Shown here: positions 7,095 through 60,200 of the stretch, in pieces | How positions within the stretch are numbered: the stretch's first letter is position 1 | How the letters are laid out: every line of letters starts with the position of its first letter | Assembly: GCA_051530055.1 (NCBI GenBank) | Contig: CM121343.1 | Location: forward strand, 4,000,389 to 4,064,388 | Source of the DNA: Neoechinorhynchus agilis | Lineage: Eukaryota > Animalia > Acanthocephala | Reading direction: 5' to 3' | Length of the DNA: 64,000 nucleotides | Notes under the pieces: generated by a model | The model's database searches: none | What the model was told of the DNA's origin: nothing | The model's input: only the letters and a program-made list of their open reading frames with translations | Position numbers and translations under genes: made by a program

Positions 7095-7500
7095 TCATTT
7101 CTCGACAATTAACACACTCACCACCTCCCGCCGAATTCCAGCTTTTGTCCTTCCTCGACCGTCGCCATCACGCTGGCAGCATTGCCCCGTTGTACTGCTA
7201 GCGAGATATTTTGTCGAAGGAATACGCCTGCTCTTGAGTCTCCGGTTGCCTCTCTCAATTTCTTCGAGAGATCCTGGAGCAGAGAGAGTGCCGAGCTGCC
7301 GAGCGCTCCATACGTCTCTACCCCAAAGGGGACAAAATAGTGAGCCCTCGATAAGTGAAGATATTTCCGTATTTTCCTCCCTTCCGCTGCACTGGCGGCA
7401 CCACCGGCGATTTCGAGGGAGTAGGGGATGTTGCTGGCTGCGAGGGCGTCCACACACGTGGCGTCCCAGAGAAGGCATTAGCCCTCCCGCCACGATACAT
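7095..7500 (-). mobile_element. 3' fragment of CRE-clade non-LTR retrotransposon (restriction-like endonuclease region), decayed
   Basis: Translation WREG*CLLWDATCVDALAAS...GAASAAEGRKIRKY...VPFGVETYGALGSSA...FLRQNISLAVQRGNAASVMAT matches the PW..G..LxWDxT and SxAxQRGNA signatures of CRE-like RLE C-termini; one in-frame stop. Confidence 0.8.
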
Positions 7501-10290: not shown

Positions 10291-10644
10291 GTTGGCGATG
10301 CCATAAAAATGTCGGTAATCTAAGAACCTTCTAAAGATAAAAACAAGTACATTTCGGGCCTTAATGTTGAGGTCATTACTCTAAATGCGAAAATTTACTT
10401 TCAAATTCAATTGGAGGTATGGAAATGGCGGCATTTGGCGGCAAACTTGGGCATCGCCTGATTTCACCCTTCGTTTTGGAACTTTTTGGTGTGCGTTTTG
10501 CGTCGTCACAAAACACGTGTGACTCAATGCGCGCGCGTGTGCGTGCGTGCGAACAGGCGGGTGCGCATCTGTGTTCAAAGCGACGGAGTCGAAATCACAA
10601 AACAGACAAGAGGTCTTGAGGTTTCCAGTCCAAATGTCGCGCTG

Positions 10645-11819: not shown

Positions 11820-13380
11820 CTTTCCCTTCATGGACGCGCGATGAATTTTTAGACAAACAACCTTGATTGTTGACATGAAAACATCAATGTCAAATAAAAC
11901 TACCTTTTTTGATAAACTGTAAAGCTGATTACCGTTTTTGGTGGCCTTTTTCATTTTTATCTTTAGTTCACCGATTAAACTTCCTAAAAGACAACTGAAT
12001 TCAATCAAGAGATCAGCAATTCTGGGTATCGCTAATGCGGTGATTTCATTGGTTTTATCCAATTTTGTCGATTATTTCAAATTTCATCATTGTGCACTGT
12101 TTTGACAATTGACGAATTGAACGCTTTCAGTTTTGTGAAAAAGGCCGCACACAGATACCTAATAAAAAGAAGTTACCGGCTGGCCAGTCTTCAAAAAATA
12201 AACCTAGATATGTTTAAGTTCATTTTGTACATCTCGACACGCTGATTCCAAAATTGTTTTCCGATCTGTGATGGCTGCTATAGTTCTTGAGTTATTCGTC
12301 TTTCAATTTTTAGACCAATAACCTTGATTATAGACCAAGAAACATCAATCAATATCAAATTAAATAACTTTTTCTTGATCAACATTTAAATCTGTTTTCA
12401 CCTGCATAAACTATTTACCGTTGCTGTACTTATCTACATATTTAATTTACTGATTAATGTTTATAAGACACTTGAATTTAAAAAATTGCAATTAAGCTGG
12501 CAAGACCTAAGAAGCGATTCTAAATACATCAAATTCGGAAATTTCATTAGAATTAACAATTTTTCTTTATTACTTCAATATTCATGATTTTTCACGTTCA
12601 CGACTTTTGAGGAAACAAACAATCGAGATTTGCAGCGTTAAAAAATTGAAATTAGCTAGTTAAGTACATCTCGACACGCTGATTCCAAAATTGTTTTTCG
12701 ATCTGTGATAGCTGCTTTGTTTCCTGAGTTATTCGTCTTTCAATTTTTAGACCAATAACCTTGATTATAGACCAAGAAACATCAATCAATATCAAATTAA
12801 ATAACTTTTCTTGATCAACATTTAAAGCTGTTTTCACCTGCATAAACTATTTACCGTTGCTGTACTTATCTACATATTTAATTTACTGATTAATGTTTAT
12901 AAAAGACACTTGAATTTTAAAAAATTGCAATTAAGCTGGCAAGACCTAAGAAGCGATTCTAAATACATCAAATTCGGAAATTTCATTAGAATTAACAATT
13001 TTTCTTTATTACTTCAATATTCATGATTTTTCACGTTTACGACTTTTGAGGAAACAAACAATCGAGATTTGCAGCGTTAAAAAATTGAAATTAGCTATAA
13101 TTAAGTAACTTAATTCAGTACATCTCGACACGCTGATTCCAAAATTGTTTTTCGATCTGTGATAGCTGCTTTGTTTCCTGAGTTATTCGTCTTTCAATTT
13201 TTAGACCAATGACCTTGATTATCGATATCAGAATATTAATCAATTTTAAATCAAATAACCTTTCCAGAATCAACTTTTAAAGCTGATTTCGCCTGCATAT
13301 TCTGTTTTTTGGTGGCTTTTCTAATCTGTACATTTAGTTTGAAGATTTATGTTCATAAAAGACACCTGAATTTAATCAAA
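11820..13380. repeat. Tandem ~440-bp repeats: two close copies plus diverged partial flanking units
   Basis: GTACATCTCGACACGCTGATTCCAAAATTG at 12227, 12664 and 13118. Diverged homologous sequence at ~11820-12060 and ~13200-13380. Confidence 0.85.
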
Positions 13381-28354: not shown

Positions 28355-30712
28355 AAATTATTTACCGCGGATAAAGACTTGTAAACAATAATTCGGTAAT
28401 CATAAACCCTCCCGGTACTTCCTCACATATTGCCACTTGAACTATTTAAAGAAAATTTATTTTAAATACCTGATATCGTCTTGGGAGGACTGGAATTATT
28501 GCTTACAAGTCTTCAGCCGGTAAATAATTTTTTTTATTTAATAACAAACTGACGATTAAGCCTTTTTGCGTTGTTCAAAGAACGTTTTATCAAATTATTT
28601 ACCGCGGATAAAGACTTGTAAACAATAATTCGGTAATCATAAACCCTCCCGGTACTTCCTCACATATCGCCATTTGAACTATTTAAAGAAAATTTATTTT
28701 AAATACCTGATATCGTCTTGGGAGGACTGGAATTATTGTTTACAAGTCTTCAGCCGGTAAATAATTTTTTTATTTAATAACAAACTGACGATGAACCCTT
28801 TTTGCGTTGTTCAAAGAACGTTTTAACAAATTATTTACCGCGGATAAAGACTTGTAAACAATAATTCGTAATCATACAGCCCCCGGTACTTCCTCACATA
28901 TCGCCATTTGAACTATTTTTAGAATATTTATTTTAAATACCTGATATCGTCTTGGGAGGACTGGAATTATTGTTTACAAGTCTTCAGCCGGTAAATAATT
29001 TTTTTATTTAATAACAAACTGACAATGAACCCTTTTTGCGTTGTTCAAATAACGTTTTCACAAATTATTTACCGCGGATGAAGACTTGTAAACAATAATT
29101 CTGTAATCATACAGCCCCCGGTACTTCCTCACATATCGCCATTTGAACTATTTAAAGAAAATTTATTTTAAATACCTGATATCGTCTTGGGAGGACTGGA
29201 ATTATTGTTTACAAGTCTTCAGCCGGCAAATAATTTTTTTATTTAATAACAAACTGACGATTAAGCCTTTTTGCGTTGTTCAAAGAACGTTTTAACAAAT
29301 TATTTACCGCGGATAAAGACTTGTAAACAATAATTCGGTAATCATAAACCCCCCGGTACTTCCTCACATATCGCCATTTGAACTATTTAAAGAAAATTTA
29401 TTTTAAATACCTGATATCGTCTTGGGAGGACTGGAATTATTGTTTACAAGTCTTCAGCCGGTAAATAATTTTTTTATTTAATAACAAACTGACGATTAAG
29501 CCTTTTTGCGTTGTTCAAAGAACGTTTTAACAAATTATTTACCGCGGATAAAGACTTGTAAACAATAATTCGGTAATCATAAACCCCCCGGTACTTCCTC
29601 ACATATCGCCATTTGAACTATTTAAAGAAAATTTATTTTAAATACCTGATATCGTCTTGGGAGGACTGGAATCATTGTTTACAAGTCTTCAGCCGGTAAA
29701 TAATTTTTTTATTTAATAACAAACTGACGATTAACCCTTTTTGCGTTGTTCAAAGAACGTTTTAACAAATTATTTACCGCGGATAAAGACTTGTAAACAA
29801 TAATTCGGTAATCATACAGCCCCCGGTACTTCCTCACATATCGCCATTTGAACTATTTTTAGAATATTTATTTTAAATACCTGATATCGTCTTGGGAGGA
29901 CTGGAATTATTGTTTACAAGTCTTCAGCCGGTAAATAATTTTTTTATTTAATAACAAACTGACGATTAACCCTTTTTGCGTTGTTCAAAGAACGTTTTAA
30001 CAAATTATTTACCGCGGATAAAGACTTGTAAACAATAATTCTGTAATCATACAGCCCCCGGTACTTCCTCACATATCGCCATTTGAACTATTTAAAGAAA
30101 ATTTATTTTAAATACCTGATATCGTCTTGGGAGGACTGGAATCATTGTTTACAAGTCTTCAGCCGGTAAATAATTTATTTAATAACAAACTGACGATTAA
30201 CCCTTTTTGCGTTGTTCAAAGAACGTTTTAACAAATTATTTACCGCGGATAAAGACTTGTAAACAATAATTCTGTAATCATACAGCCCCCGGTACTTCCT
30301 CACATATCGCCATTTGAACTATTTTTAGAATATTTATTTTAAATACCTGATATCGTCTTGGGAGGACTGGAATCATTGTTTACAAGTCTTCAGCCGGTAA
30401 ATAATTTTTTTATTTAATAACAAACTGACAATGAACCCTTTTTGCGTTGTTCAAATAACGTTTTTCACAAATTATTTACCGCGGATGAAGACTTGTAAAC
30501 AATAATTCGGTAATCATACAGCCCCCGGTACTTCCTCACATATCGCCATTTGAACTATTTTTAGAATATTTATTTTAAATACCTGATATCGTCTTGGGAG
30601 GACTGGAATCATTGTTTACTAGTCTTCAGCCGGCAAATAATTTTTTTATTTAATAACAAACTGATGATGAACTCCTTCTACGTGGTTAAAAGAACGTTTT
30701 TAACAAATTATT
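28355..30712. repeat. Tandem array, 235-bp unit, about 10 copies; each unit is a fold-back with a hammerhead-like core in the linker
   Basis: Period 235 (AACGTTTT at 29286, 29521, 29756). Arm AAATTATTTACCG-CGGATA-AAGACTTGTAAACAATAATTC is the imperfect reverse complement of GAATTATTGTTTACAAGTCTT-CAGC-CGGTAAATAATTT. Confidence 0.97.
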
Positions 30713-31757
30713 GATCCAAAGAATTCAGGAATGTTTCGATTCTTTAGCATATTTGTGGCTCAGCCGGATAGATTTTTTAGTATATATTTGAGGTTGCTCA
30801 AATTCCCTTGGCTGATTTGGGCACACAGTCCAATGATTTATTAGCCAGGAAAGAACTGGTCTACGCTAAATACCCACGACCGTACAATTATGAGTCTGTA
30901 CATTCCTACGGATATTCAGATACCTCCCGAGGAGGCGGAACTCATCAGTGAGCTCCCTCTCTTCAACGAAGTATATCGTTCCCTTTGGTTATGGGTCATC
31001 GGCGGTAACGGATTCGAACCCTTGATCAAAACAATTCAGTAATGTTTCGATTCTTTGGCGACGGCTGATAATTTATTTTTCATTGGGCCCATCACCTACC
31101 GATCTGCTTCAGCGATTAAAATAACATTAATACCCCGGCAATGCCGCGGCCATCAAGGAAGCTGCCGAACAATCATAACCTATGGGTAATGCGGATTTGA
31201 TATGACTGCGAAATAGAATTTATACAGAAATTAATCGAATTTGAATACCCATGGGTGAGAGGTGATTTATTAAAAAATTCGAGGTCTCTAATTTAGCTAG
31301 TGCCTTAATATAATTCTTCTCCTTTATTACTACTGTTAAATCGTCGGCATGCATCGTGATTGAACGGCAAATCGAGCAATTACATACTATGTATTGGGAA
31401 ACTAGGCAAAATAAAATAGGCGATAAGGGAGAACCCTGGGGAACTCCTTTGAGTTACCAGTAAACGGGTCGTGTGGGATCATCCGCAAAGATAAACCGCT
31501 TTGAATATAATGTATTGTGGACCATGTGCTCGGAATAAAATGAAACATTTTTGATGGATCGATAATTTCGTCACGTTGCACATTCGGCGTATATGTAAAA
31601 AACAACTAAAAACTTGCCCACGCAGACCGGCAATCGGTTCGGACTGTAACTCGGTTCGTTCATGCGCGCAAATGTAGTTGGGAACAAAAATTGCGCTCTA
31701 GCGAAACCGAAGGAAGAGGTACCGCCAGATCCAAGGGATATTCGACGGAGGATTTTG

Positions 31758-32133
31758 ACCGAAAAAAGTACGGGTCAAGGTCCTCCTGGGCTTCTGACCT
31801 CAAAGTCATGTTTGCCGGCTTCTCGAATCAATTAGCTCGATACCATGATTTCGGTGAGATTGCCAAATGTATCGGTCTTCCGTTATACTGGAAAAGCTTA
31901 CTGTACAGAGCTGTGGGTGGTCGTCGGCGAAGCGAGAACATTACATACGACCAAGTCCACAATGTATGGAGCCGGCTATACGATCGCTGTAATGATCGCT
32001 GTTCGCAATTTCTCACTCTTATCACCGCGGGAAAGTCCAATGAGCGAAACAAGATCGAAAGCAAGGACTGGGATCACTTTATGCTCGACGTGGTAAACAC
32101 ACATCCGGGATTGGAGTTTTTAAAAAAGGCAAA
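31758..32133 (+). pseudogene. Inverted partial copy of PP2A B'' exon 1 (copy of 35737-35362)
   Basis: Reverse complement of the parent from ACCGAAAAAAGTACGGG to AAAAAAGGCAAA; encodes RKKYGSRSSWASDLKVMF...GLEFLKKA. Confidence 0.95.
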
Positions 32134-33029
32134 TAGTAAAAGATCCATTCTTTTGACCATTTCATTTCTTAGAGTGATGTTTACCTTGTACTTTGTAATT
32201 TGTCCTCTTCAGCGATTAGAAACCATACAAATTCCCAGTAAGACATTCGTCCCTGCCTTATCCTTTCCGTGTTGTACACGGCGGCACCGCTGAATATTCG
32301 ATCAATAATTCGTTTTGATATGGCTCTGTTATTATGTTCATAAAGGTCCAAATTTGAAATGAACAAATCGTGATCTGTGTCAATGTCCCAGAATTTACAG
32401 TAAATGACATAAAAGTGCTCATAAGAAAAGTAATCAGTCATTCGATTAATATCATTCTCGGTTTCCAGTTGTTCAATAGAGTCAAGGATATTGCTGTTTC
32501 TTAGTTCTCCAACAGTAATTTTTCCGTTCCATGATCGATTTACACTAAAATAGATTCTAGATATGACCTGTATATGATATGAACGCGTTTCAGAATGAAA
32601 ATAATATGGGAAAAAAGAGGCAAACCGTTATGCAATAGCGAGAAATGAATTCCTTTGCCTTTTTTAAAAACTCCAATCCCGGATGTGTGTTTACCACGTC
32701 GAGCATAAAGTGATCCCAGTCCTTGCTTTCGATCTTGTTTCGCTCATTGGACTTTCCCGCGGTGATAAGAGTGAGAAATTGCGAACAGCGATCATTACAG
32801 CGATCGTATAGCCGGCTCCATACATTGTGGACTTGGTCGTATGTAATGTTCTCGCTTCGCCGACGACCACCCACAGCTCTGTACAGTAAGCTTTTCCAGT
32901 ATAACGGAAGACCGATACATTTGGCAATCTCACCGAAATCATGGTATCGAGCTAATTGATTCGAGAAGCCGGCAAACATGACTTTGAGGTCAGAAGCCCA
33001 GGAGGACCTTGACCCGTACTTTTTTCGGT
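32133..33029 (-). pseudogene. Direct partial copy of PP2A B'' (34841-35737): end of exon 1, intron 1, exon 2, start of intron 2
   Basis: Matches the parent at a constant 2708-bp offset; intron retained; identical ORFs listed at 32181/34889 and 32590/35298. Confidence 0.95.
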
Positions 33030-33114
33030 ACAGTTGTCCGTCGACTTTAGATGATATTTTGAAAGCCGTCCTAGAATTTCATTCTTCGGGTTCTATCGAG
33101 GATCAAAAGCAAAT

Positions 33115-33780
33115 CTTTGTAAATTGATAAGTAAAGATCGGATTCTTAATCATTGCAAGATATCTTTCCTATTCGAGAATATTGGGACGATTTCTCTCGG
33201 TAGCCGAATTTAGTCTTTTCTACCGAAAATGGATATTTTTTAAGCAGATTAAAAGAATCTACAATTTTGAGCACATGAACAAAAGCGAAGCATTGTAAAT
33301 TGAAACGTAAAGATCGGATTAATCATTGCAAGATATCTTTCCTATTCGAGAATATTGGGACAATTTCTCTCGGTAGCCGAATTTAGTTTTTTCTACCGAA
33401 AATGAATATTTTTAAGCAGATTAAAAGAATCTAATATATTGAGCACATGAACAAAAGCAAAGCATTGTAAATTGATACGTAAGGATCGAATTCTAAATCA
33501 TTTCAAGATATCTTTCCTATTCGAGAATATTGGAACAATTTCTCTCGGCAGCCGAATTTAATTTTTTTATTCTGAAAATGGATATTTTTAAGCAGATTAA
33601 AAGAATCTACAATATTGAGCACATGAAAAAAAGCAAAGCATTGTAAATTGATACGTAAGGATCGAATTCTAAATCATTTCAAGATATCTTTCCTATTCGA
33701 GAATATTGGGACGATTTCCCTCGGCAGCCGAATTTAATTTTTTTTCTGAAAATGGATATTTTTGAAGAACGCTAAAAGAA
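33115..33780. repeat. Tandem array, ~175-bp unit, about 3.7 copies
   Basis: CATT(G/T)CAAGATATCTTTCCTATTCGAGAATATTGG at 33151, 33324, 33499 and 33675. Confidence 0.93.
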
Positions 33781-34159: not shown

Positions 34160-36344
34160 TTAGACTAAAAGAAAAACCCTACACGTTTCATCATCTCCAG
34201 TCGTCGTTGAATTCTGTGCGTGATCCTCACGTATTAGAATTTCATACTCTTCAGCTGCATAACGAACCCAATTGCTTATTGGTGGACGCTCCGGTCCCTA
34301 AAGAAATCGTATTTCAACTAGAATCGTTATTCAACAACAACAACAAAGCAACAAACCGCCGTGTCAGCGAATGGGTCCTTTTGGTCATGATCAAGATATT
34401 TATGGATGTTTATGAAGGTGTCGAAAAAGAGGTGGGCCATTTTGCTTCGTTTCAAATCCATTAAACGTATTTTATTAACTTCCACTGGTCTAATCATGTC
34501 AAACATTTGACACATTAGGTCTTCAAACTGCATAAACTCGTAATTTAATTTCTCCAGTTGTTGAATCTGTTCCTCGTAAAAGTATTCCAGTTCGTACATG
34601 GACAATACGCCGTCACCGTCAGTGTCCATGATACGGAACCAGTACTCAATGCTAAATTAAGAAGGCAAAAGAATTTAATTTGTCACTCTAAAGTCCGATT
34701 CGTCATCAAAGAATGAAAACCCAGTTATGCTGACGGTTAATAAATGCTGCTTTTTTGCATTAAACCCATTTAGAGGACATGTTTCAACGCCATGACTCTA
34801 TGGGTTTTCGTGAGGAGAGTGTATTTCCAATAATTTAGCAATAGTAAAAGATCCATTCTTTTGACCATTTCATTTCTTAGAGTGATGTTTACCTTGTACT
34901 TTGTAATTTGTCCTCTTCAGCGATTAGAAACCATACAAATTCCCAGTAAGACATTCGTCCCTGCCTTATCCTTTCCGTGTTGTACACGGCGGCACCGCTG
35001 AATATTCGATCAATAATTCGTTTTGATATGGCTCTGTTATTATGTTCATAAAGGTCCAAATTTGAAATGAACAAATCGTGATCTGTGTCAATGTCCCAGA
35101 ATTTACAGTAAATGACATAAAAGTGCTCATAAGAAAAGTAATCAGTCATTCGATTAATATCATTCTCGGTTTCCAGTTGTTCAATAGAGTCAAGGATATT
35201 GCTGTTTCTTAGTTCTCCAACAGTAATTTTTCCGTTCCATGATCGATTTACACTAAAATAGATTCTAGATATGACCTGTATATGATATGAACGCGTTTCA
35301 GAATGAAAATAATATGGGAAAAAAGAGGCAAACCGTTATGCAATAGCGAGAAATGAATTCCTTTGCCTTTTTTAAAAACTCCAATCCCGGATGTGTGTTT
35401 ACCACGTCGAGCATAAAGTGATCCCAGTCCTTGCTTTCGATCTTGTTTCGCTCATTGGACTTTCCCGCGGTGATAAGAGTGAGAAATTGCGAACAGCGAT
35501 CATTACAGCGATCGTATAGCCGGCTCCATACATTGTGGACTTGGTCGTATGTAATGTTCTCGCTTCGCCGACGACCACCCACAGCTCTGTACAGTAAGCT
35601 TTTCCAGTATAACGGAAGACCGATACATTTGGCAATCTCACCGAAATCATGGTATCGAGCTAATTGATTCGAGAAGCCGGCAAACATGACTTTGAGGTCA
35701 GAAGCCCAGGAGGACCTTGACCCGTACTTTTTTCGGTACAATTGTCGGTAAGGAATAACTGTAAAGTGACCAATGGATAAAGGTTCGTCTTCGGAACCAG
35801 TGCCATCTTTCTCTCCCTCTTGCTGCTGCTGCTGCTGCTGCGTGGTCATGGTCGTCGTCGTCGTTGGTGTTTCGGTCGTCGTATCGTCCAAGGTAGTGAA
35901 AGTGACGACAGGCAACACGGACGAGACGGATAAACTACTTTGTTGATGATAGATTGGCGGTGCCGGTAAGTGTGGTCTATCCGGTGACGACGGCGAAGAT
36001 GATCCAGCACAGACTTCAGCGTTTTCAACTTTGGTCGAAACATAATCGCCTTTCGCAAGTCGCAAAGAGTCTTCACACTTTACAAATGAGGTGGAACCAT
36101 TTTCGAAATTAGAGAGCGCTCCTCTGAGAACGTCTTGAGTCTCCTGTTGAGTAAGCCACCTCAAGAACAGCTCATTCACTTTGCTTTGAAAAGAAGTCCT
36201 ATAATCACTGCTCTGCTGACAGGAAGAATGCGATGATGTATTCGACGAAGACGAGGATTGGCTGGTGGGGCTGATCACTCGCGATCCGTTAGTTCGTTCG
36301 ATTAAATTCGATGATTGCAACCTTTGACCGGAAGGGCCATTCAT
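34160..36344 (-). CDS. PPP2R3: PP2A regulatory subunit B'' (PR72/PR130 family, EF-hand), 4 exons
   Basis: VNTHPGLEFLK, YFSYEHFYVIYCKFWDIDTDHDL, RIIDRIFSG, EFVWFLIAEEDK, IEYWFRIMDTDGDGVLSMYELEYFYEEQ and DPFA...NWVRYAAEEYEIL; three GT-AG introns; last exon 34297-34160. Confidence 0.93.
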
Positions 36345-40360: not shown

Positions 40361-42588
40361 AGCGGTGAACGATTGTGTAGCCCTCAATCGAAATGTCTCT
40401 GACAAAAATGTGATCAGGGATTGTGGCTTAACAAAAATCAATCAGAAAAAATCAATCAAAATGGAAGAACGTTAAAGGTGACTCCTTTAAGAGTGCCCAT
40501 CTACAGAGGAAGAATTGAAATTCTACCCCCTCAGGTCCCCAGGGAACATTCTTCGAGAGTATGAACTCTTGGGGAAATAACGACGATCTCATGATTTTCG
40601 TGTTTCTATGGTGTCTGTGGAAGTAAATCAGAACTTTCTAAGCCTTCCTGAACGGAATACCGAGAGCACCATTCATGTCACATTGAACTATGCACAAAAC
40701 GATTATGCCGGAAATTTAGAATGAAACTAACGATATACCGAGATCTTGAGTAAAAAAGAATCTTCGAGTGACAAGAAAAATAACCCAGCAGCTAAAAGTG
40801 CCATTTTTAACAATTGTGGCAAAAAATTGACGAGGCAACTATTGGGAACCACTACCCAACGATATTGAGCTATCGGGACGCTCATGAAAATAACGCGTTT
40901 TACGAGAGGGGATTCTTCCGTGGATATAGCGAGCTATCAAATACACTTTAGGCCCTAATCCAAGAGCACTCAAAGTTAAACAAATGTTGGAATTTAACCC
41001 TTTTTTTGTTAGAATGTAGTTTCAACGTGGAACAATTGGGTGGTGGGCTTTGATATTAAGAGTGAGAAATTTCGGCCTTAAGGAGTGTTTGTGAACTTTT
41101 TTCTATTCCTCTCTGGCTCACACGATTGCACGTTCGCTTCTTTTTGTTGTAAAAATTTAAATATGAAGCCGAAACAGCGAGGAAGAGGAATCCTAACACC
41201 TACGTCATCTACGTTGCTATGACGTCAACTTAAGTGCGCAATTGTAAACGTTATGAAGTGTGTTAAAATGATAGCGCTTCTCCAAAATATCGAACGGCGG
41301 GAATACCTTATCTTTGAAATTGTCACAACCTCGTCGTACTCTTTCCATTTGTTCCTTGATAATACTTCATTTGACCAAAAAAAGCATAGTCAGACCGGAG
41401 ACTTTCGGACATCTAGCAAATTCACGGAGATCAACATGGAGTCTAAACTCAAAACGATATTTTTCTCGCAAAGTTATTTAATAGCGGTCTTAATTTCCAT
41501 TTGTATCAGAAATGTGTCCGTCGTCCCGTGGATTTTTACCTTTGACGTCACCGATTCTTGTACCAATTTTAGCGCACAGTGAATGTTTCTAGACCTCCTT
41601 ACATATCGACCATTCTATCGGGGTTTTTGATGATTAACCCATACAAAATCTTGAGAATTTTTCATTTCTAAAATTCGTACGCTATTAGAAATTATAGTTG
41701 TAGGCAATACCTTGGATAATCGCCGAATTTAATCGAACGTCTGTCCTTCCACTCTGCTTCCAAGAACCATGCTTAAAAGCTGATGAGAAACCTTCAGGTC
41801 GTTGAAAAAAGAGGAACTTGAAGCTCTTTACAGTTTTCCGCTCGGTTGGGCTCTTCTACTGTCCAGCAGAAATCTACGAAAGTTGGCAACTAGAAGAACC
41901 CACTGCAGATTCGATGACGGCGCGGATCTTATAATTCGACCGAACGGATGGGTCCCCAGGATAAAAGCGGTATTTTATTGAGATATTTCGAAAGAGGAAG
42001 CCTCGTCAGTCATCTTAAAAGGTTTGTGTTCAGGTTCGCAGAGGATCGCCATTCCCGAGGTTTGAAGACCGCGTGTCCACTCGTACAAACGAGGTGAGGC
42101 CTCCTCGCTAAATATCTTCAATAAAATATGTGTGTTTTAAAGGAATAATTGATTAAATCTGCAATTTAGGTCATTTCATTGCCTTTGCTGCAAAAAGGAG
42201 GGTTATGGCATAACTGCGATGAAACTCACGTCTTTAGTTTTAAATCCGAAATGGAGCAATGGATCGGTAGAGCCTTAAACCGGTCGCTAATGAACTAGCA
42301 CGTCTACTACTTTCAGTTAATGCTGTGGCACTGATGTAGAAGGAGCCATTAATTCTTGTGGTCAGTATGGTACCGTTTTTCTCTTGGAAAATCTTAGATT
42401 TTACGTAAGGATATGTTTATAAATTATGGAACATCTCCATTACCTTTTGCTCGCATCTAATCTGAGACTAAATCGTCGATCTCAATTTATCTGGAAAACG
42501 CGCACTCTGATCGCTTCCACACGTACGATTAAAATTGTCGTTGAATTAAAAAAAATATATAATGAAAACATTTTTGCATCCACAATCT

Positions 42589-42753
42589 GGGGCTCAGTGG
42601 CATAAGCACGCTCAAAATGCGCTCGATAGGTCGTTGGGTTCCACGGGGGTCGCGAGGCTGCTCTAAGGGTGGGGTCAGGTTTTGAGATCGCCCATTGACC
42701 CCATGCCCTTCGAGGGCGACTAAGCGCTTCCGAAAGTTAGCCAAGAGGCCCCC
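42589..42753 (+). mobile_element. GC-rich tRNA-derived SINE-like sequence (duplicated at ~47787-47951)
   Basis: A-box-like GGGGCTCAGTGG followed ~40 nt later by degenerate B-box GGGTTCCACG, in an isolated GC-rich patch; no cloverleaf. Confidence 0.3.
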
Positions 42754-42815
42754 AAAAAAAGATTGCGATTTAAGATAATAAATCCACAAGATGGAAACAG
42801 AACATTTATCAAACG

Positions 42816-45503
42816 CTATTTGAGTTCACTTCCACGGTCATTCTTATAATCGTTCAAGGTGCTTCTCAAGACTTTGACCGTTCGAAACATAAATATTTTA
42901 CGCTGCGTACTATATGGCAATAAGTGAACATTGACATTCTCGTCCATACAAATTTGATCAGTACATTCCTCCAGGTCCTTGTAAGCCGAAACATCACTGA
43001 ACACACTGAAATCGTTTGTAACACAATCCGTATTGGCTTTGGCACAAACTCTGAGTTCGCATATGTATTTATACATCTTCTTGATAAGATTTATCATTAA
43101 TAAGATAATCTTGTCGCTGACGAGCTGTCTAAACTTGTACCTGACTAAGGTGTGCGAATGAATTGAAACTCCAAGTATCAAAGCCGTATATGCTGCCAAA
43201 AGACTGTTGTGAAAACTCGTGAGGCAACGTGATTTCAATAAGGATATCCCATCCATACCAGACTGCGATTCTTTATTGCAATAATCGTTGAATGTGGGTA
43301 GTCTTTAGAGATTTTTTTGATTTTAACATCTATTACAAAAAATATCTATCGTGCTCATCTTTATCAATCACTTTAGACGATAGTAAAAAACCGAAAAATT
43401 CAAGGCAATATATTACAAGAAAACGTTTATAAAATTTAGTAATGTGGAACCTCTTAATAATCGATGAACAAATCCATTAGCATTCGAATTACTGAGTTGA
43501 GAAGCGGTTAGGTAATAAACTTAAATATAAGAGGAGAACCCAGGACTAAGAAGAATGAAATTTAAACATCAACGTTTACAGTCTTAAGAGCATCGTCGAA
43601 GCATTTGAAATTTTCTGAGTCTTGTTTCACGACTTGCCCGATTTTCAATTGAAAAAACCTCGTTAAAGATCCCAGGAGGTCAAGAGAATCCGATTCCTGC
43701 GATTGCTTAAGTAGAGACTTGAATAGTGGATTCTTCGGGTCTACTGAAAAATTGCCGAGACTGCATAATAAGAGATAAGAAATTGTATAAGAGCGTGGTT
43801 CTGGATCGGATCCAAACTTCTTTATGGTGGTAATCATGTCTTTTAAGAAATCCATTGACGAATCGTTTAAGATCCTTTCCGAAACGGCATGCGATCGTGA
43901 CGTTAAATGGAACAAAACCCAACAAGCGTTCTCCACTATTTCGTTCGTCAGCATATCAATGGAATGGATAGAAATAACGTCCTTTAAAATGATTCCAATA
44001 GATTCCGCCAAGGAAAGTGCGGAAGCAATGTCATTTATTATTTTGCTCGAAAACCTCCCTTCGCTTTCATACATTCCAGTTACGGACGAAATTATACTGT
44101 TGACAATGGTAAAATACTTAAGCATAAGGAGTGATTTCCAACTTGTTAGATGAATGATTTTCGAAGAGGAGATGTTAACAACTGTCATACATTGAATCTC
44201 CTTTATTACATATTGGTTGAGCCGAGTTAAGTAATCGACTAGAGTTAATTGTGCTTGTTCAGAAAAAGAATCAATCGCACGATTTCCTTCGTCGGACAAG
44301 ATTGAGAAATCACTTAGACTGTCATGTAGGCCTTCAGAATGGTTTCCTAATATTTTGTTCGCGTGAATAAATTTACATACTTTTGCAACAACATCAGCAA
44401 TTAAAAGATTACATGACATTTCAGACAAATAATAACGAGTAAGTTCTTTTTCTGCAGGTGGAATCGCTCGAGACAGTATACTGCAGAATTTAGGAACGGA
44501 GTACTGTTGATATCGTCGAGAGTATTCCACCAAATCACAAAGTAATTGGAAATATTCAATCAGAATGTCAGGAGAACACGGGATGACCGATTGGTGAATT
44601 GTCATCGCCCATACAAGTACAAGAATAGGTTGAAAAAGAATGCGTTCGCCATGAACGCTAACATTTATCTCATGAGCCGTTTTTGCCAGGGAAAGTACAA
44701 TGTTCTCACCAAAACACCCTTTCCGTTCAGATTTATGTTCGATTGACTCCAATTGCGGAATCAATATCCTATCGAGTAAAGCATCGATTTCCTCTAACGT
44801 CAAAAAACAGATTTTCGTTATCGATTGTAACAAGAACTCAAAATTTACGATATGGATTTTCTCTCGATATGATTAATAGATGCTTTGTATCGATAATTTG
44901 AAGACAAGATTAATTCAAACCAACTGTGAGAACATCTCAGGTGTTTTTTACATTAACTACAGCCAATATGACAAAAAATAAATTTAACAAAACCCCCACC
45001 TAAATGGAAACTTCGCATAATGCCCTAGGAAAATCTCAATTGTTAAAAAATAGAAAATCTGTTCTTGTGGCGTGTAATTTAGCACTCGCCAAAAATCTTT
45101 TCGACGTTATAACTTCCATGTGTCGCTCAGCATTGGCAATAAAGTTCGCTATAAACTGTTCCTCGTTGTTCTTTTCCATTTCGAGAAGTTTTAATCGAAG
45201 TGCAGCAATCTCAGCGGTTTCAATAACTACTACATCATCGTTTCCATTTGCCGATTTCGTACGTTTTCCATCAAAATCGACTTTTATGCGATGATCAGGC
45301 ACCGTATCGAGTGTATCATCTTTAGGCGGCGGCGGCAACCTTCCCATCGAAGAATCCTTCTTCTCACTACTTTGACCACACTTATTTTCCTCGGCTAACC
45401 TAGCCGCAAGCTTCAAACTTGCAGATTTTACGATCTTACCAAAGGCTCGATCCCGGTGCCCAGTCGTGTTCTTTGAAGTATTCTTCTTTTCGGATGTGGG
45501 CAT
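42816..45503 (-). CDS. WAPL: Probable WAPL (cohesin release factor), multi-exon, divergent
   Basis: FHNSLLAAYTALILG...MINLIKKMYKYI resembles the WAPL C-terminus (DCIVASYTALLLG...MTEMLKKFLSFM). VLFHLTSRSHAVSERI and PEPRSYTISYLLLCSLGNF resemble VLLNLTNDNEWGSTKT and PQEQRFDIRVLGLGLLINL. Whether ORF 45036-45503 is the first exon is not resolved. Confidence 0.6.
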
Positions 45504-45855
45504 ATCTCTTGAAGATCACTAAATGTGGACCAATTCAATCGCTCACAAGCTAAGCCACACGATGCATGAATGAAAAATTAAAACGATAAAACCACAAAAC
45601 CAGTGTTAAGGCGAAAAAACCCATTAACGACCAAATCGATCGTCGATGATGCAATTAAACAAAAATATTAATTTTCCTTCTTTCGCGGCAATGTTCCATC
45701 ATGAAATTTCACTGCGATTTGTACGAATGTTCGAACTTATAGATTAGATCTTTTTTTAAAAAAAATGTCCCCACATTTGAATTTTTTAACATTACGCATC
45801 GTCCTTCTTAGTTGAAGGCCACTAAGTTGCCAAATTGTTCAATAATCCATTCGAG

Positions 45856-46585
45856 CGGTGCCTGATCATCGCATAAAAGTCGATTTTGATGGAAAACGTA
45901 CGAAATCGGCAAATGGAAACGATGATGTAGTAGTTATTGAAACCGCTGAGATTGCTGCACTTCGATTAAAACTTCTCGAAATGGAAAAGAACAACGAGGA
46001 ACAGTTTATAGCGAACTTTATTGCCAATGCTGAGCGGCACATGGAAGTTATAACGTCGAAAAGATTTTTGGCGAGTGCTAAATTACACGCCGCAAGAACA
46101 GATTTTCTATTTTTTAACAATTGAGATTTTCCTAGGGCATTATGCGAAGTTTCCATTTAGGTAGGGGTTTTGTTAAATTTATTTTTTGTCATATTGGCTG
46201 TAGTTAATGTAAAAAACACCTGAGATGTTCTCACAGTTGGTTTGAATTAATCTTGTCTTCAAATTATCGATACAAAGCATCTATTAATCATATCGAGAGA
46301 AAATCCATATCGTAAATTTTGAGTTCTTGTTACAATCGATAACGAAAATCTGTTTTTTGACGTTAGAGGAAATCGATGCTTTACTCGATAGGATATTGAT
46401 TCCGCAATTGGAGTCAATCGAACATAAATCTGAACGGAAAGGGTGTTTTGGTGAGAACATTGTACTTTCCCTGGCAAAAACGGCTCATGAGATAAATGTT
46501 AGCGTCCATGGCGAACGCATTCTTTTTCAACCTATTCTTGTACTTGTATGGGCGATGACAATTCACCAATCGGTCATCCCGTGTT
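45856..46585 (+). pseudogene. Inverted copy (730 bp) of 44575-45304, 5' region of the WAPL-like locus
   Basis: Reverse-complement match with about 4 substitutions seen (e.g. HATRT vs HAART); duplicated ORFs 45858-46124 and 46327-46587. Confidence 0.93.
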
Positions 46586-48337
46586 AGTCAGACCGGAGAC
46601 TTTCGGACATCTAGCAAATTCACGGAAATCCACATGGAGTCTAAACTCAAAACGATATTTTTCTCGCAAAGTTATTTAATAGCGGTCTTAATTTCCATTT
46701 GTATCAGAAATGTGTCCGTCGTCCCGTGGATTTTTACCTTTGACGTCACCGATTCTTGTACCAATTTTAGCGCACAGTGAATGTTTCTAGACCTCCTTAC
46801 ATATCGACCATTCTATCGGGGTTTTTGATGATTAACCCATACAAAATCTTGAGAATTTTTCATTTCTAAAATTCGTACGCTATTAGGAATTATAGTTGTA
46901 GGCAATACCTTGGATAATCGCCGAATTTAATCGAACGTCTGTCCTTCCACTCTGCTTCCAAGAACCATGCTTAAAAGCTGATGAGAAACCTTCAGGTCGT
47001 TGAAAAAAGAGGAACTTGAAGCTCTTTACAGTTTTCCGCTCGGTTGGGCTCTTCTACTGTCCAGCAGAAATCTACGAAAGTTGGCAACTAGAAGAACCCA
47101 CTGCAGATTCGATGACGGCGCGGATCTTATAATTCGACCGAACGGATGGGTCCCCAGGATAAAAGCGGTATTTTATTGAGATATTTCGAAAGAGGAAGCC
47201 TCGTCAGTCATCTTAAAAGGTTTGTGTTCAGGTTCGCAGAGGATCGCCATTCCCGAGGTTTGAAGACCGCGTGTCCACTCGTACAAACGAGGTGAGGCCT
47301 CCTCGCTAAATATCTTCAATAAAATATGTGTGTTTTAAAGGAATAATTGATTAAATCTGCAATTTAGGTCATTTCATTGCCTTTGCTGCAAAAAGGAGGG
47401 TTATGGCATAACTGCGATGAAACTCACGTCTTTAGTTTTAAATCCGAAATGGAGCAATGGATCGGTAGAGCCTTAAACCGGTCGCTAATGAACTAGCACG
47501 TCTACTACTTTCAGTTAATGCTGTGGCACTGATGTAGAAGGAGCCATTAATTCTTGTGGTCAGTATGGTACCGTTTTTCTCTTGGAAAATCTTAGATTTT
47601 ACGTAAGGATATGTTTATAAATTATGGAACATCTCCATTACCTTTTGCTCGCATCTAATCTGAGACTAAATCGTCGATCTCAATTTATCTGGAAAACGCG
47701 CACTCTGATCGCTTCCACACGTACGATTAAAATTGTCGTTGAATTAAAAAAAATATATAATGAAAACATTTTTGCATCCACAATCTGGGGCTCAGTGGCA
47801 TAAGCACGCTCAAAATGCGCTCGATAGGTCGTTGGGTTCCACGGGGGTCGCGAGGCTGCTCTAAGGGTGGGGTCAGGTTTTGAGATCGCCCATTGACCCC
47901 ATGCCCTTCGAGGGCGACTAAGCGCTTCCGAAAGTTAGCCAAGAGGCCCCCAAAAAAAGATTGCGATTTAAGATAATAAATCCACAAGATGGAAACAGAA
48001 CATTTATCAAACGCTATTTGAGTTCACTTCCACGGTCATTCTTATAATCGTTCAAGGTGCTTCTCAAGACTTTGACCGTTCGAAACATAAATATTTTACG
48101 CTGCGTACTATATGGCAATAAGTGAACATTGACATTCTCGTCCATACAAATTTGATCAGTACATTCCTCCAGGTCCTTGTAAGCCGAAACATCACTGAAC
48201 ACACTGAAATCGTTTGTAACACAATCCGTATTGGCTTTGGCACAAACTCTGAGTTCGCATATGTATTTATACATCTTGATAAGATTTATCATTAATAAGA
48301 TAATCTTGTCGCTGACGAGCTGTCTAAACTTGTACCT
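46585..48337 (-). pseudogene. Direct copy (1753 bp) of 41387-43142: WAPL-like 3' end plus downstream DNA
   Basis: Begins TAGTCAGACCGGAG and ends AAACTTGTACCT as in the parent; a few SNPs and a 3-bp deletion (IKKMYK vs IKMYK). Confidence 0.95.
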
Positions 48338-48881
48338 AGCGAATTATTATATAGTTGAATTATTTTTGATAATTTTCGGCTTTCGCGTAGGCCTTCTTCA
48401 GTCTATCTAAAATGCACTCAAGAAGCACTCAATTTCGTTTATCCGGTAGTTTTCTCAAGATTGAGTTTGTAATCCGTTTTGTTGCTTACAAACGTATCCG
48501 TTTTTGTATCATGATGGCCTCTGTCGTACACTCCGCGTACGAATCTGAGTGCCATCAAAATTAATCTGGTGCCCACGGGACACCATTGTCGAATTCAGTC
48601 CTCTTTAAGGCTGCTCTTCGGTGCTCGGCAATCCTTCTTTTCAGATTGTTCGTTTGTCCCACATATGAAATGACACATTCAGCAGGAACATCCTCATTCT
48701 TCGGCCGAATCGTGAACTCCTTATCCTTGTTATTTCGGGGTTATATAACAAAAAGGGCAGGACTCCACAGTGTACTTCGGCCGAAGAATGAGGATGTTCC
48801 TGCTGAATGTGTCTACAAGATCCCATGTTCCAACTGCAATCTATCTCATATGTGGGACAAACGAACAATCTAAAAAGAAGG
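48338..48881 (-). mobile_element. Penelope-like element remnant: GIY-YIG 3' end (minus, 48709-48338) with an inverted 5' segment (plus, ~48720-48881)
   Basis: Plus strand LHSVLRPKNEDVPAECVYKIPCSNCN(fs)YVGQTNNLKRR. Minus strand YVGQTNNLKRRIAEHRRA...GHQINFDGTQI...EAIMIQK, then a hammerhead motif. The inversion point falls on the palindrome TTCGGCCGAA. Confidence 0.82.
48366..48405 (-). ncRNA. Minimal type-I hammerhead ribozyme at the Penelope-like 3' end
   Basis: GA-CTGAAGA-A-GGC[CTACGCGAAA]GCC-GAAA-ATT-A-TC: intact core, palindromic AATT stem III, UUA cleavage triplet; stem I only 2 bp. Confidence 0.65.
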
Positions 48882-49093
48882 GGTAAAACGGAGAGGATTA
48901 ATGACGGTCAGTGTAGTGTGGGTTATTCTTCACCTTTTATCGCTCACAATTGTTACAAATTAGGATGCGATGGACATTTAGGTGAGGATTCTCCCAAATC
49001 AAAGTCCCTTATTTGCCGTTATTCTGAAACAAGCGACCACGCACACACTTAGGGCTGATAAACCGATATCAGTACTCAAATCAAAGTTGCGGC

Positions 49094-49982
49094 TTAGAAG
49101 TGATCCTTAAGTGCGTTGAGTAGTGATGCGCATTTCGAATGATAATCTCGTTGAGCTTCAACCAGATCCACAAGGCACTTAAGTTGTCTACTATTGGCGG
49201 AACTTTCAATCTGATCGACTAATATCTTGGTAACTTCCATTTGGCGCTCAAATGCTGCCTGGCAAGTACCGAGTTCTACGTCGGGTTCAGAGTCGTTGTT
49301 TGCCTGTTTCATTTTCATTTTAGCGGCATCAAGTTCGAATCTTGCATTTTCTAAATTCTTACGCTCCTTTTGGAGATCTTTAAGATCTCCTTCGATGAAT
49401 CCATGGAGAGGCTGGACAAATCCTGACAAAATGCGTTCATTTGTTTCCTTCTTTATCTTGCCTAATTGCACCTCAACTTCACCTATTGTTTTAAGCGAAG
49501 AACCTGTAAGGCAAAATCATTAGCTACAACCAAATAAAACCAACGTGCCAACCGAACATGGAATTCGGCCCAATATCGACCGAAGCGTCCAACATTAATC
49601 TTCCTAGAGCTTCTAACACATTCGGTTTATCCTTTACTGATTGACCGATCTTCGATAAGATAAATCCTTCCAGTTTCTCCACTTTCAAATGAAATCACAA
49701 TTAAAATCACTATAATGTTAAAAACAACAACCTTGACTCGGTTGGATAAGTCCGTCGGCCTGCTCTATTAAGCGATCGATCCATATTTTTTGCTTTTCGA
49801 CGCGCTTCAATGACGCCTCCAAATTGGGATCTAGTTGGGTTTTCTCGCTCTTACCAAGAGTTTCTTGTGTGACCTTTCGGGAAAAGGGGAAAATCGGCTC
49901 GTAATAGTATCCCACAAACCTGCTGCATACGATTTAGCATTTTGTTAGCCCCTTCGGCCAGTGATTTAAGGTCGAAATTCAT
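49094..49982 (-). CDS. SH3GLB1: Endophilin-B (SH3GLB1-like) N-BAR protein lacking an SH3 domain, 4 exons
   Basis: MNFDLKSLAEGANKMLNRMQQ|VTQETLGKSEKTQLDPNLE...IWIDRL...LIQP, FIEGDLKDLQKERKNLENARFELDAAK, FERQMEVTKILVD, QLKCLVDLVEAQRDY; three GT-AG introns; stop right after the BAR domain. Confidence 0.85.
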
Positions 49983-50741: not shown

Positions 50742-51359
50742 AATAAAACACTTCTGAAAAGAATTACAAGAATAAATTAGACTTTGGAAAAAACTATCTG
50801 ATAATTCGCCATAAAAAAGTAAATGATGAACATCTTTACAACATTACGAAGTGTATTCGTTTGTATCAAACCAATTTAAAATATCCATATTTGGTCAGAA
50901 ATCGAAGGGGGATCAGGAGGCGTGGAAGGCCGAGAAAACGATGGAAAGATTGAGTGGCTGAGGTGTCACCTTTACGGAGGAATGTGTGAAGTCTTTGGAC
51001 TGCAAGTTTTTGTGCGACCCCGGGAAGGAAAAGCATGAAGTTGAGGCTGTTGGTCAGAAATCACATGTGTCCTAGGCGAAGCTAGCATGTCCGACAAATC
51101 TGTTAGGAACCCTGAACATTAATAAGCAAAATGGACACTTTTTCGTTGTGCCCAACGATAATCCAGAATCAGTTGGGGCTATAAAATTGCAGCAGACCAC
51201 ACAGACTCCCGTTAACATCTCAACTTCCATTTTTGCCATGGAAATGTGTGGATCTGATGCAGATATTTTCTGGTGATGAGGAAAATAGAGATTGGCTTAT
51301 TTATTCTCATTAAATTTCGTCCGTATCGTTGGACGTCTTGAGGTTGTTTGAAAGTTAAC

Positions 51360-51450
51360 CTGAAAAAGTCGGACGAACGAAATTTAATGGGAAATAATAA
51401 ACCAATCTCTATTCTTCTCATCACCAAAAAATACATATATATGAACAATT
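51360..51450 (+). mobile_element. Possible decayed LINE reverse-transcriptase fragment
   Basis: KKSDERNLMGNNKPISILLITKK resembles the LINE motif KKGD...NYRPISLL; very short. Confidence 0.35.
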
Positions 51451-52703: not shown

Positions 52704-52740
52704 GATCCTGATGAAGGAGTAAAACTCCGAAATGTTGGTC
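52704..52740 (+). ncRNA. Degenerate minimal hammerhead ribozyme (Penelope pLTR type)
   Basis: GATC-CTGATGA-A-GGAGT[AAA]ACTCC-GAAA-TGTT-GGTC: stem I 4 bp, stem II 5 bp; TGTT replaces the usual CGTC, so probably inactive. Confidence 0.6.
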
Positions 52741-58393: not shown

Positions 58394-59015
58394 ATCTCAA
58401 TTGAAAATACTTGTTTTATCCGGGCGGCGATTATGGTCGCCACATCTCTAATTTTATCATCCCGAAGGATTTTCTCTTTATGACATATCCAAAAAATGAA
58501 TGGAAAATATTTTATTGAAGACATTTCACAATGAAAAACTGGGCGAAAAAAGCTTTTATAATTTCTCAATCATTTAGCAACGACTTAATCTCAATTGAAA
58601 ATACTTATTTTATCCGGGCGGAGATAATGATCATTAAATCTCTAATTCTATCATCCCGAAGGATTTTCTCTTTATGACATATCCAAAAAATGAATGGAAA
58701 ATATTTTATTGAAGACATTTCACAATGAAAAACTGGGTGTAAAAAGCTTTTATAATTTCTCAATAATTTAGCAATGACTTAATCTCAGTTGAAAATATGT
58801 GTTTTATCCGGGCGGAGATAATGATCATTAAATCTCCAATTCTATCATCCCGCAGGATTTTCTCTTTATGACATATCCAAAAAATGAATGGAAAATATTT
58901 TGTTGAAGATATTTCACGATGAAAATCTGGGAGAAAAAAGCTTCTATAATTTCTCAATAATTTAACAATGACTTAATCTTAATTGAATATCCTTGTTTTA
59001 TCCGGGCGGAGATTA
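58394..59015. repeat. Tandem array, 194-bp unit, about 3.3 copies
   Basis: ATCTCAATTGAAAATA...TTTATCCGGGCGG at 58394, 58588, 58782 and 58976. Confidence 0.93.
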
Positions 59016-59629
59016 CGATCACCGCAGAAACACTGTTCTGTTTCCAGAATAAAATTAGAGAGACCAGAATCGATCGATTGATCATTGGAAGAAATCAGAG
59101 TCTAAAGTGCAGAAGTTTAATTCTTATTCCGCTTTCTTCCATTGCGAGGCAAGGACGCCCTAATTTCTATCTTGAATATAACGCATGACTAACCTTCCCT
59201 TTGAGCTAGAAGCAAAATGTAGAACGTCATCAGAGCCTAGTTTGTCAAATACTACTAACGGATCAGGAAGAAATTGGTCAAAAATCACGATGGTGCCATC
59301 GGACTTAATTACGCTCATATCCGTCCGTTTTGAATTAAAAGAATGTGTTACCGTCAGGATGCAGTGCATTCATTTTTGTTGATTTTTGCTCTTTAGAAAA
59401 TGTCGATCGATTAAAGTAGCAATGAAATCAATAGACATTATCCGAAGGACATCGAATACTCTTTTCTATGATTAACTCTAAACCGAGGAATATCTCCAAG
59501 AAATAAAGTTCACCGACCTTGCTAAACCCGACTGGAGAAATCGTTTTTGGAAACGCCGAATTCGCCAGAAGAATATACGTTCAGATTCCAAGGATTAAAT
59601 GTGACGCAACGTTTAAACACGTATTAATT

Positions 59630-60200
59630 CTGAATTTGTTGTTTTGGTTCTCCTTCCGGTAAAGAATGTTTTGTAAAAAAGACGTTTGGAACCTCGACGG
59701 GTTCCTCTACTTCCAAGGAAACTGATGATGAACCTGACGAGGTTCGAAACGTCTTTTTTTACAAAAAAATCTTTACCAAGCCGATTCTTATCTTAAATTT
59801 AAGAAGCGTTAAATTTCGCATTTACGTCTTTGTACGGTTGAGAACGTTTTTAACGAAGACGCTTCGAAGCTCGTCGTGTTCATTGAGCTTTCTGTAAACG
59901 TAAAGAATCTTTAACCCTACATATTTTAAAATGTTGGTAACGTTTAAACTGAAGATGAATGCAAAGGAAAATTTGTTGTTTTGGTTCTCCTTCCGGTAAA
60001 GAATGTTTTGTGAAAAAAAGACGTTTGGAACCTCGTTGGGACGGAATGAAACCAAAATAAGAAAATACTTCCCTGGTTCCTCCTCACAAATCGACATTGA
60101 TAGCGCTTATAATGATTATTATTGAAAAACATTTAATTTCTTATTTTGTTCTTCGTCCTGTATAGAATGTTTTGTAAAAAAAAGACGTTTGGAACCGTTC
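59630..60200. repeat. Fold-back element (~59630-59800) carrying the hammerhead, plus two further partial left-arm copies (~59968-60035, ~60135-60196)
   Basis: TTTTGTAAAAAAGACGTTT(G)GAACCTCG pairs with CGAGGTTC(G)AAACGTCTTTTTTTTACAAAA; AAGAATGTTTTGT.AAAAAAGACGTTTGGAACC recurs three times. Confidence 0.8.
59715..59760 (+). ncRNA. Intact minimal type-I hammerhead ribozyme
   Basis: AAGGAAA-CTGATGA-T-GAACCT[GACG]AGGTTC-GAAAC-GTC|TTTTTTT: full core, 6-bp stem II, palindromic ACGT stem III, GUC cleavage after 59753, 7-bp stem I (2 G-U). Confidence 0.8.

Follow-up and report, generated by a model that had tools for sequence, protein, structure and literature searches.

The window analysed here is a stretch of 64,000 nt from chromosome CM121343.1 of the acanthocephalan Neoechinorhynchus agilis (assembly GCA_051530055.1, positions 4,000,389 to 4,064,388). 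It contains a block in which parts of the host gene ACOME3_009432 are copied directly against the remnant of a Penelope-like element (PLE), and this block is more suggestive of a recent accident of repair or copying than of a ribozyme-driven silencing device. On balance we consider it probable that a young, probably unselected complex rearrangement took place, through serial template switching at a break at the 3′ end of the PLE. A patch of 2,483 bp, composed of an inverted copy (B′) and a direct copy (A′) whose templates both lie within 4.5 kb, would have been laid between the upstream region of the gene (45855) and the 3′ end of the PLE remnant (48338-48881). The sources, the copies and their junctions J1 to J3 are as follows.

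41387..43142, minus strand: source segment A, with the terminal 327 nt of the last ACOME3_009432 exon (42816-43142) and 1429 nt of downstream non-coding DNA.

44575..45304, minus strand: source segment B, which forms one of the inverted-repeat arms and contains the 3′ 269 nt of a 155-aa open reading frame (ORF), followed by ACOME3_009432 exon 1, intron 1 and the ~73 codons at the start of exon 2.

45305..45855, no strand: spacer or loop, in which the 155-aa ORF has its ATG and presumably also its promoter.

45856..46585, plus strand: B′, inverted copy of 44575-45304, starting at J3 (between 45855 and 45856).

46585..48337, minus strand: A′, direct copy of 41387-43142, joined to B′ at J2 (46585) and to the PLE 3′ end at J1 (between 48337 and 48338).

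All coordinates given for A, A′, B, B′ and the spacer in the first-pass annotation of this DNA were confirmed to the base, and so was its remark that the copies are not identical, seven substitutions and one 3-bp indel being counted in total. A and A′ are direct copies with 99.66% identity over 1756 columns, differing by three substitutions and the indel at 43076-43078 (3 bp deleted in A′). B and B′ are inverted copies of 730 nt with 99.45% identity and four substitutions; the spacer between them is 551 nt (45305-45855) and does contain an ATG, that of the 155-aa ORF at 45503. Because six of the seven substitutions are transitions, the differences resemble true mutation or polymorphism, not nanopore indel error. 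The copy identity of 99.5-99.7% suggests a recent, unselected event, unless gene conversion keeps the copies alike, and the gene-silencing function proposed earlier for the block was not supported.

On the plus strand the order is spacer, reverse complement of B, A, reverse complement of the PLE from 3′ to 5′, a further PLE piece, and the 3′ untranslated region (UTR) of an upstream BAR-domain gene, with only 5 kb between source and copy. Microhomology at J1, J2 and J3 is 0-1 nt each. At J2, a tail-to-tail join, B′ and A′ share one T; a shared T at J1 is possible only if the PLE template had the tail seen in other copies of its family. As annotated, an intron is retained in the copy, since intron 1 of ACOME3_009432 lies inside B, and because the copies hold this intron and 1.4 kb of downstream DNA, the template was either genomic DNA or unspliced RNA.

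The PLE remnant beyond J1 consists of two arms.

48338..48712, minus strand: minus arm, a decayed GIY-YIG C-terminal region and a 3′ UTR with a minimal hammerhead ribozyme (min-HHR) motif, ending 32 nt past the predicted cut.

48750..48881, plus strand: plus arm, an inverted 132-nt GIY-YIG N-terminal piece with a Cys pair (VYKIPCSNCNLSYVGQT), head-to-head with the minus arm.

A GIY-YIG C-terminus beside the block, as first annotated, was recovered with Pfam PF01541 in the minus arm (E = 6e-5, 23.7 bits, cutoff 22.6) and by tblastn of the relic region against three N. agilis GIY-YIG proteins, P0002-P0004 (1e-13 to 1e-14). The plus arm matched PF01541 with E = 3.7e-4 and 21.2 bits, slightly under the 22.6 cutoff. 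The relic (about 48710-48438, minus strand) contains frameshifts, stops and a 29-nt deletion. The whole remnant is about 540 bp, 5′-truncated and without a tandem pseudo-long terminal repeat (pLTR), and the plus arm is truncated at both ends; truncated head-to-head copies are a standard PLE feature (PMC8557442). Upstream of the endonuclease no reverse transcriptase was found and the BAR-gene 3′ UTR stands there instead, as expected for a fragment. Judged by its sequence, the neighbouring element is an ordinary decayed PLE fragment with its family's minimal hammerhead.

Three other N. agilis loci of 6-13 kb each, which encode P0002-P0004 (L002-L004), align with the remnant from the endonuclease region through the 3′ UTR. 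The homology of the window copy ends at J1, about 14 nt before the point to which L002-L004 still align. We found no inverted arm in L002-L004, and the inverted PLE arm therefore would have arisen at this site; its inheritance from the family was rejected, the three copies being simply longer forward copies. The two arms in the window are identical at 75/77 positions and differ by one 29-nt indel. With this proper alignment, the idea of an ancient PLE with arms 23-35% diverged was rejected and the argument from age became much weaker.

The min-HHR-like motif in the minus arm was resolved as follows.

48364..48407, minus strand: min-HHR-like motif, with a 34-nt core at 48401-48368.

48401-48395, minus strand: C3-A9 of the core, followed by an extra A at 48394.

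48393-48391 with 48380-48378, minus strand: helix II, 3 bp.

48377-48375, minus strand: G12-A14, followed by A15.1, A15.2, U16.2 and U16.1 at 48374-48371 and A17 at 48370.

The hammerhead first annotated at 48405-48366 stood in part. Its sequence, CUGAAGA-A-GGC(C)...GCC-GAAA-AUUA, matches the published min-HHR of animal PLEs and recurs in the three other copies, but Rfam 15 gave no hammerhead match over the whole window at the gathering score or over 47800-49800 at E <= 10. Min-HHRs were missed by the canonical hammerhead descriptor of their discoverers (PMC4209133). The cut is predicted between 48370 and 48369, 32 nt before J1, which agrees with the ~30 nt described earlier between the hammerhead and the copy. 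Over the four copies (window, L002-L004) the family pattern is CUGAAGA-A-GGCC-N8-GGCC-GAAA-AUUU-UC, positioned ~40-100 nt past the ORF stop. The window copy and L004 have a complete catalytic core; L002 carries G5A and L003 carries U4C, and with core mutations in two of the four, the motif is under no visible constraint in the dispersed copies sampled. Helix II has 3 bp in the window and 4 bp in the consensus, helix I has 2-4 bp, and for helix III only a palindromic AAUU is present. Helix pairing over the four copies reached 70% of cells against <=45% in slid registers, with no covariation, and the minimum free energy fold of the motif was no better than that of shuffles (z = 0.55). Except for a chance-like match inside A and A′, no second motif was found on the minus strand of the window. 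We infer that the hammerhead is the element's usual 3′-region motif, with no role in the duplication.

Other hammerhead-like sequences were observed on the plus strand. A well-formed minimal hammerhead at 59722-59759 (CUGAUGA-U-GAACC-UGACGA-GGUUC-GAAAC-GUC, 5-bp helix II, palindromic ACGU) is enclosed by a 120-nt imperfect palindrome (59658-59777), itself part of a short repeat cluster at 59633-60196, and is probably another PLE or retrozyme-type relic. A weaker match at 52708-52740 (CUGAUGA-A-GGAG-UAAAA-CUCC-GAAA) has a good helix II, with helix I/III unconvincing.

In the rearrangement that we favour, a single strand would have been extended through three switches with 0-1 nt of microhomology. 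It would have folded back onto B, giving the tail-to-tail join, then jumped to 41387 and copied through to 43142, and then switched into the PLE. The initiating break or primer may have been at the PLE 3′ end, where either the PLE endonuclease or reverse transcriptase could have acted at its own tail, or PLE cDNA could have been primed from the 3′-OH of A′. The plus-strand 3′ end of A′ sits exactly at the primer position expected for target-primed reverse transcription of the PLE. By a rough estimate (2-3 motifs in 64 kb), the chance of an insertion site <=35 nt from a hammerhead motif is ~0.1-0.2%, and therefore a mechanistic link to the PLE end is plausible; we consider a link between the block and the PLE end the likelier case. 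According to published work, both strands are cut by the PLE protein, its endonuclease needed the tail to recognise and cleave a PLE fragment, and PLE reverse transcription starts internally, without target homology (PMC11167929). For rotifer PLEs, which moved intron-containing host genes, snap-back self-priming and template jumps were proposed (PMC3846280). Of the earlier statement that PLE activity generates duplication-inversions of host genes, the plausible part is the link at this site, where host DNA with an intron abuts the PLE 3′ end to the base, but recurrence was not supported.

Several observations weigh against serial switching at the PLE end. Divergence is greater between the PLE arms (2/77 plus the 29-nt indel) than between the host copies (7/2483; Fisher p = 0.028), a hint of a PLE older than the duplication, which would count against a single event. 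A continuation of the PLE tail beyond the patch, searched with the two flanks joined as an empty site, was not significant (p = 0.09-0.58), and a 7-bp target-site duplication candidate, AATTGTT (45833, 48948), was within chance expectation. The two host segments have opposite polarity, that of a cDNA in one and sense in the other, and a single pass of reverse transcription along sense RNA could account for only one of them. In addition, the structure is known from a pooled-worm hybrid assembly alone, so that a mis-assembly or a rare haplotype is possible, and look-ups of a J2-specific ORF, two copy-specific ORFs and the 155-aa ORF returned no independent contig outside the one NCBI assembly. 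The greater divergence of the arms (p = 0.028) and the homology ending ~14 nt short both speak for an older PLE that was later hit by a break, which, given the non-significant tail and target-site results, we regard as possible.

The origin of the assembly is also the basis of another explanation, an assembly artefact or haplotype mosaic, in which B′ and A′ are misplaced allelic or chimeric sequence and the true locus joins 45855 to the PLE. The 46.2-Mb genome was sequenced with nanopore R9.4 and Illumina from ~50 pooled worms, plus some single-female data, and was assembled through MaSuRCA hybrid, purge_dups, instaGRAAL, manual curation and TGS-GapCloser (PMC12690905); PLE structures are known to disturb assemblies (PMC8557442). 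The copies differ by 0.2-0.5%, as allelic variation could, two similar composites stand within 14 kb of each other, and the missing independent contig points the same way. However, N runs are absent, and none of the junctions falls on the DpnII and HinfI sites used by the scaffolder. Uncollapsed haplotigs yield simple tandem copies, not inverted-then-direct pieces of non-adjacent origin, and ligation chimeras would be expected to join random loci, not two segments within 4.5 kb. No amplification step is described in the protocol (the word "amplification" occurs 0 times in the text of the assembly paper, PMC12690905), and L002-L004, from the same assembly, do not contain such structures. We regard an artefact as unlikely, though it is the strongest competing explanation.

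The second composite involves a PP2A B′′-like gene. Segment D (32132-33038) is a direct 907-bp copy of 34840-35746, and segment C (31742-32133) is an inverted 392-bp copy of the 5′-ward part, joined tail-to-tail with D at 32133 with 3 nt of microhomology. C ends within ~5 nt of the outer end of D, as expected of a snap-back copy running off its template. The match to this case noted in the first-pass annotation was borne out for the tail-to-tail geometry seen at J2, but no GIY-YIG or hammerhead was found at the junctions of the PP2A composite. Similar composites were also absent from L002-L004, where further members of this PLE family lie, and a recurrent PLE system was therefore not supported by the PP2A junctions or by these three loci. 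We consider it very unlikely that in acanthocephalans active PLE machinery at PLE 3′ ends repeatedly copies pieces of adjacent host genes tail-to-tail by snap-back and template jumps, with the resulting inverted repeats at gene starts feeding small-RNA pathways and PP2A as a second instance.

Some further observations concern the surroundings of the PP2A composite. NCBI annotated the composite (31742-33052) as a second PP2A-like gene, and a 176-bp satellite array follows directly after the duplicate. An exact 11-mer, CCGAAGAATGA, is present at 33079-33089 (minus strand), 35 nt past the right end of the duplicate; it occurs elsewhere only in the two PLE arms (48694-48704 and 48781-48791), and the homology is no longer than the 11-mer. 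A degenerate reverse-transcriptase fragment (31301-31462, minus strand; Pfam RVT_1, E = 1.3e-6) lies ~280 nt left of the inverted copy. It has no PDB or database homologue, and Pfam RVT_1 does not separate PLE from long interspersed element (LINE) origin.

Since the PP2A case shows the same geometry with no GIY-YIG or hammerhead at its junctions, it also bears on a purely host rearrangement of the replication-based or break-repair kind (fork stalling and template switching/microhomology-mediated break-induced replication, FoSTeS/MMBIR, or end-joining type), which would have ended at an old PLE remnant by chance. Such an event would suit templates all within 4.5 kb, three switches and one fold-back with a 551-nt spacer. 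It would also suit the seemingly greater age of the PLE arms compared with the host copies, and a PLE homology that ends ~14 nt before the family 3′ end, as though a later break had removed the rest. Two points make this explanation quite unlikely in our view: the base-exact abutment to the PLE 3′ region is improbable by chance (~0.1-0.2%, an estimate), and 0-1 nt of microhomology is low for MMBIR.

A different route would be a reverse-transcriptase patch, in which PLE machinery copied unspliced host RNA in trans, snapped back and then jumped to PLE RNA in one event. Rotifer PLEs moved intron-containing genes, and self-priming on a sense template was predicted to give tail-to-tail inverted repeats (PMC3846280). 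In the block, A′ read on the plus strand has the polarity of a cDNA, PLE cDNA comes immediately after it and begins close to the zone where initiation is expected, and the end of the PP2A inverted piece, ~5 nt from that of the direct piece, is like a run-off after snap-back. However, the polarity of B′ is wrong for cDNA of a sense RNA, the source is only 5 kb away, and the flanking pLTR pair and clear target-site duplication of the rotifer cases are missing. The PLE copy is decayed, with arms that look older than the host copies. At 41387 there is no canonical poly(A) signal at the usual distance, the nearest being an ATTAAA ~95 nt upstream, and 41387 as an mRNA 3′ end was rejected for this reason. 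We consider this route very unlikely.

The model of the first-pass annotation, a recurrent device built by PLEs in which read-through RNA is cut at ~48369 and the released hairpin silences the neighbouring gene, would have 730-bp arms, 99.45% complementary, around the start of the gene, and the hammerhead core nucleotides are intact in the window copy. N. agilis piRNAs (PIWI-interacting RNAs), PIWI orthologues and small-RNA data exist (PMC12256650), and public RNA-seq and small-RNA data for this species are available (PMC12690905, PMC12256650). Read-through from the BAR gene or the PLE is conceivable, because both are upstream of the gene and on its strand, and no canonical poly(A) signal separates them (no AATAAA or ATTAAA from the BAR-gene stop to 48300). 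Such read-through could give the 730-bp hairpin without ribozyme cleavage, as an accidental by-product, so that hairpin formation needs no cutting at all.

Release of the RNA by the ribozyme was not supported either. The min-HHR stands alone, having no same-strand partner in the window; its helix II has 3 bp and its helix I 2-4 bp, there is no Rfam match and no covariation, and core mutations (G5A, U4C) occur in two of the four family copies. Min-HHRs had no activity as monomers and weak activity as dimers in vitro (PMC4209133). For the Anolis PLE hammerhead, the only one examined biochemically within a full-length PLE system, cleavage depended on the PLE protein and insertion did not require the hammerhead, and RNA-seq contained no cleavage-site reads (PMC11167929). 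Near-identical copies suggest too little time for selection, and the PP2A junctions have neither GIY-YIG nor hammerhead. Taken with these points, the device seems to us extremely unlikely.

Compared with endonuclease-containing PLEs (Penelope/Poseidon/Neptune; Cervera & De la Pena 2014, PMC4209133; Craig et al. 2021, PMC8557442), the locus shares 5′ truncation and a head-to-head inverted partial copy. Its motif, close to the 3′ end, is like their type-I min-HHRs: one additional nucleotide follows A9, G10.1 and C11.1 would pair, and positions 15.2-16.2 are palindromic. It differs in being a decayed remnant of ~540 bp with no reverse transcriptase or tandem pLTR and a plus arm truncated at both ends, and its helix II has 3-4 bp instead of the 6-8 bp reported for many. 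The host genes moved by rotifer PLEs (2013, PMC3846280; A. vaga type) are similar in that host DNA with a retained intron adjoins PLE terminal sequence, the host belongs to a related phylum-level clade (Syndermata), and self-priming with template jumps was invoked. Those cases, however, are whole genes at distant sites with two direct pLTRs, one inverted pLTR and 8-9-bp target duplications, whereas here we found two gene fragments, one of them inverted, 5 kb from the source and with PLE on one side only. No hammerhead or GIY-YIG was found near 45855, 41387 or 43142, nor a clear target-site duplication, so the A. vaga type of framing is absent.

FoSTeS/MMBIR fold-back duplication-inversions or templated insertions also have nearby templates, several switches, an inverted segment with a spacer and tiny junction homology, but the patch here ends exactly at a retroelement 3′ end and its 0-1 nt of microhomology is at the low end of this class. 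Drosophila hairpin RNA (hpRNA) genes are endogenous siRNA loci born from inverted duplication of their target gene. The block resembles them in that part of a gene is repeated in inverted orientation, over a long stretch and almost perfectly, with potential double-stranded RNA against the parent; unlike them, one arm here is the working gene, with its start codon in the loop, and the locus is known from sequence alone. In the hepatitis delta virus (HDV)-like ribozymes of non-LTR elements such as R2 (cited in PMC4209133), a self-cleaving motif in a retroelement could likewise cut a read-through transcript. The HDV-like ribozymes are active as single copies and set the 5′ end of the element itself, whereas the motif here belongs to the minimal type that depends on dimers, and what it would free is host sequence further downstream.

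The host gene and its neighbours were arranged as follows.

42816..45018, minus strand: ACOME3_009432, 542 aa, called WAPL-like in the first-pass annotation, placed by exon mapping.

~45018-45012, minus strand: exon 1 of ACOME3_009432, placed by exon mapping, as are the next three.

~45011-44794, minus strand: intron 1.

~44793-43655, minus strand: exon 2.

43304-42816, minus strand: exon 3.

45036..45503, minus strand: 155-aa ORF, annotated as a separate gene, with its ATG at 45503 in the spacer.

49094..49471, minus strand: last coding exon of the upstream BAR-domain gene, with the stop codon 213 nt before the PLE plus arm.

A 423-aa ORF at 43562-44833 (minus strand) matched one database protein, ACOME3_009432 (hypothetical protein, N. 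agilis), with 99% identity. The stop of the 155-aa ORF is only 18 nt upstream of the ACOME3_009432 ATG (45018), and the two may be one gene, with a disordered N-terminal region and a helical-repeat domain, or a mis-split model. In ACOME3_009432 no domain, WAPL included, was matched in Pfam at E <= 10 and no PDB sequence was matched, and a look-up of its orthologue context gave nothing for WAPL. An exhaustive search of 1.84 billion representatives revealed one homologue, a distant one. The AlphaFold (AF2) model is all-helical and of low confidence (pLDDT 46.6); in Foldseek, human WapL (4k6j_B) had the top TM-scores among the matches listed (0.39/0.44, prob 1.00), but with E = 0.058. The WAPL identity thus has a weak fold match and neither Pfam nor PDB sequence support; judged from the model, it is possible that ACOME3_009432 is a WAPL protein.

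Five satellite arrays were found in the window, at 9202-10294, 12227-13299, 28355-30712, 33104-33763 and 58394-59021, with units of 106, 439, 235, 176 and 194 bp, 2.4-10 copies and 91-98% identity, which is dense for a 46-Mb genome. In L003, a 121-bp satellite of ~11 copies (6897-8285) starts ~280 nt past the 3′ end of the PLE copy. Imperfect palindromes of 140-170 nt with ~77% identity are located at 1116-1254 and 51264-51433.

At present the locus is no evidence of a new regulatory system. The PP2A composite, called as a second gene, is a caution for annotation. If the junctions are real, the block would be a clean, datable case in which a retroelement end and local template switching built a long inverted repeat at the start of a gene. 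Long inverted repeats are the raw material of hairpin-RNA genes in other animals, and the presence of two such similar composites, both tail-to-tail, within 14 kb in a genome of 46 Mb points to a process that deserves a genome-wide count.

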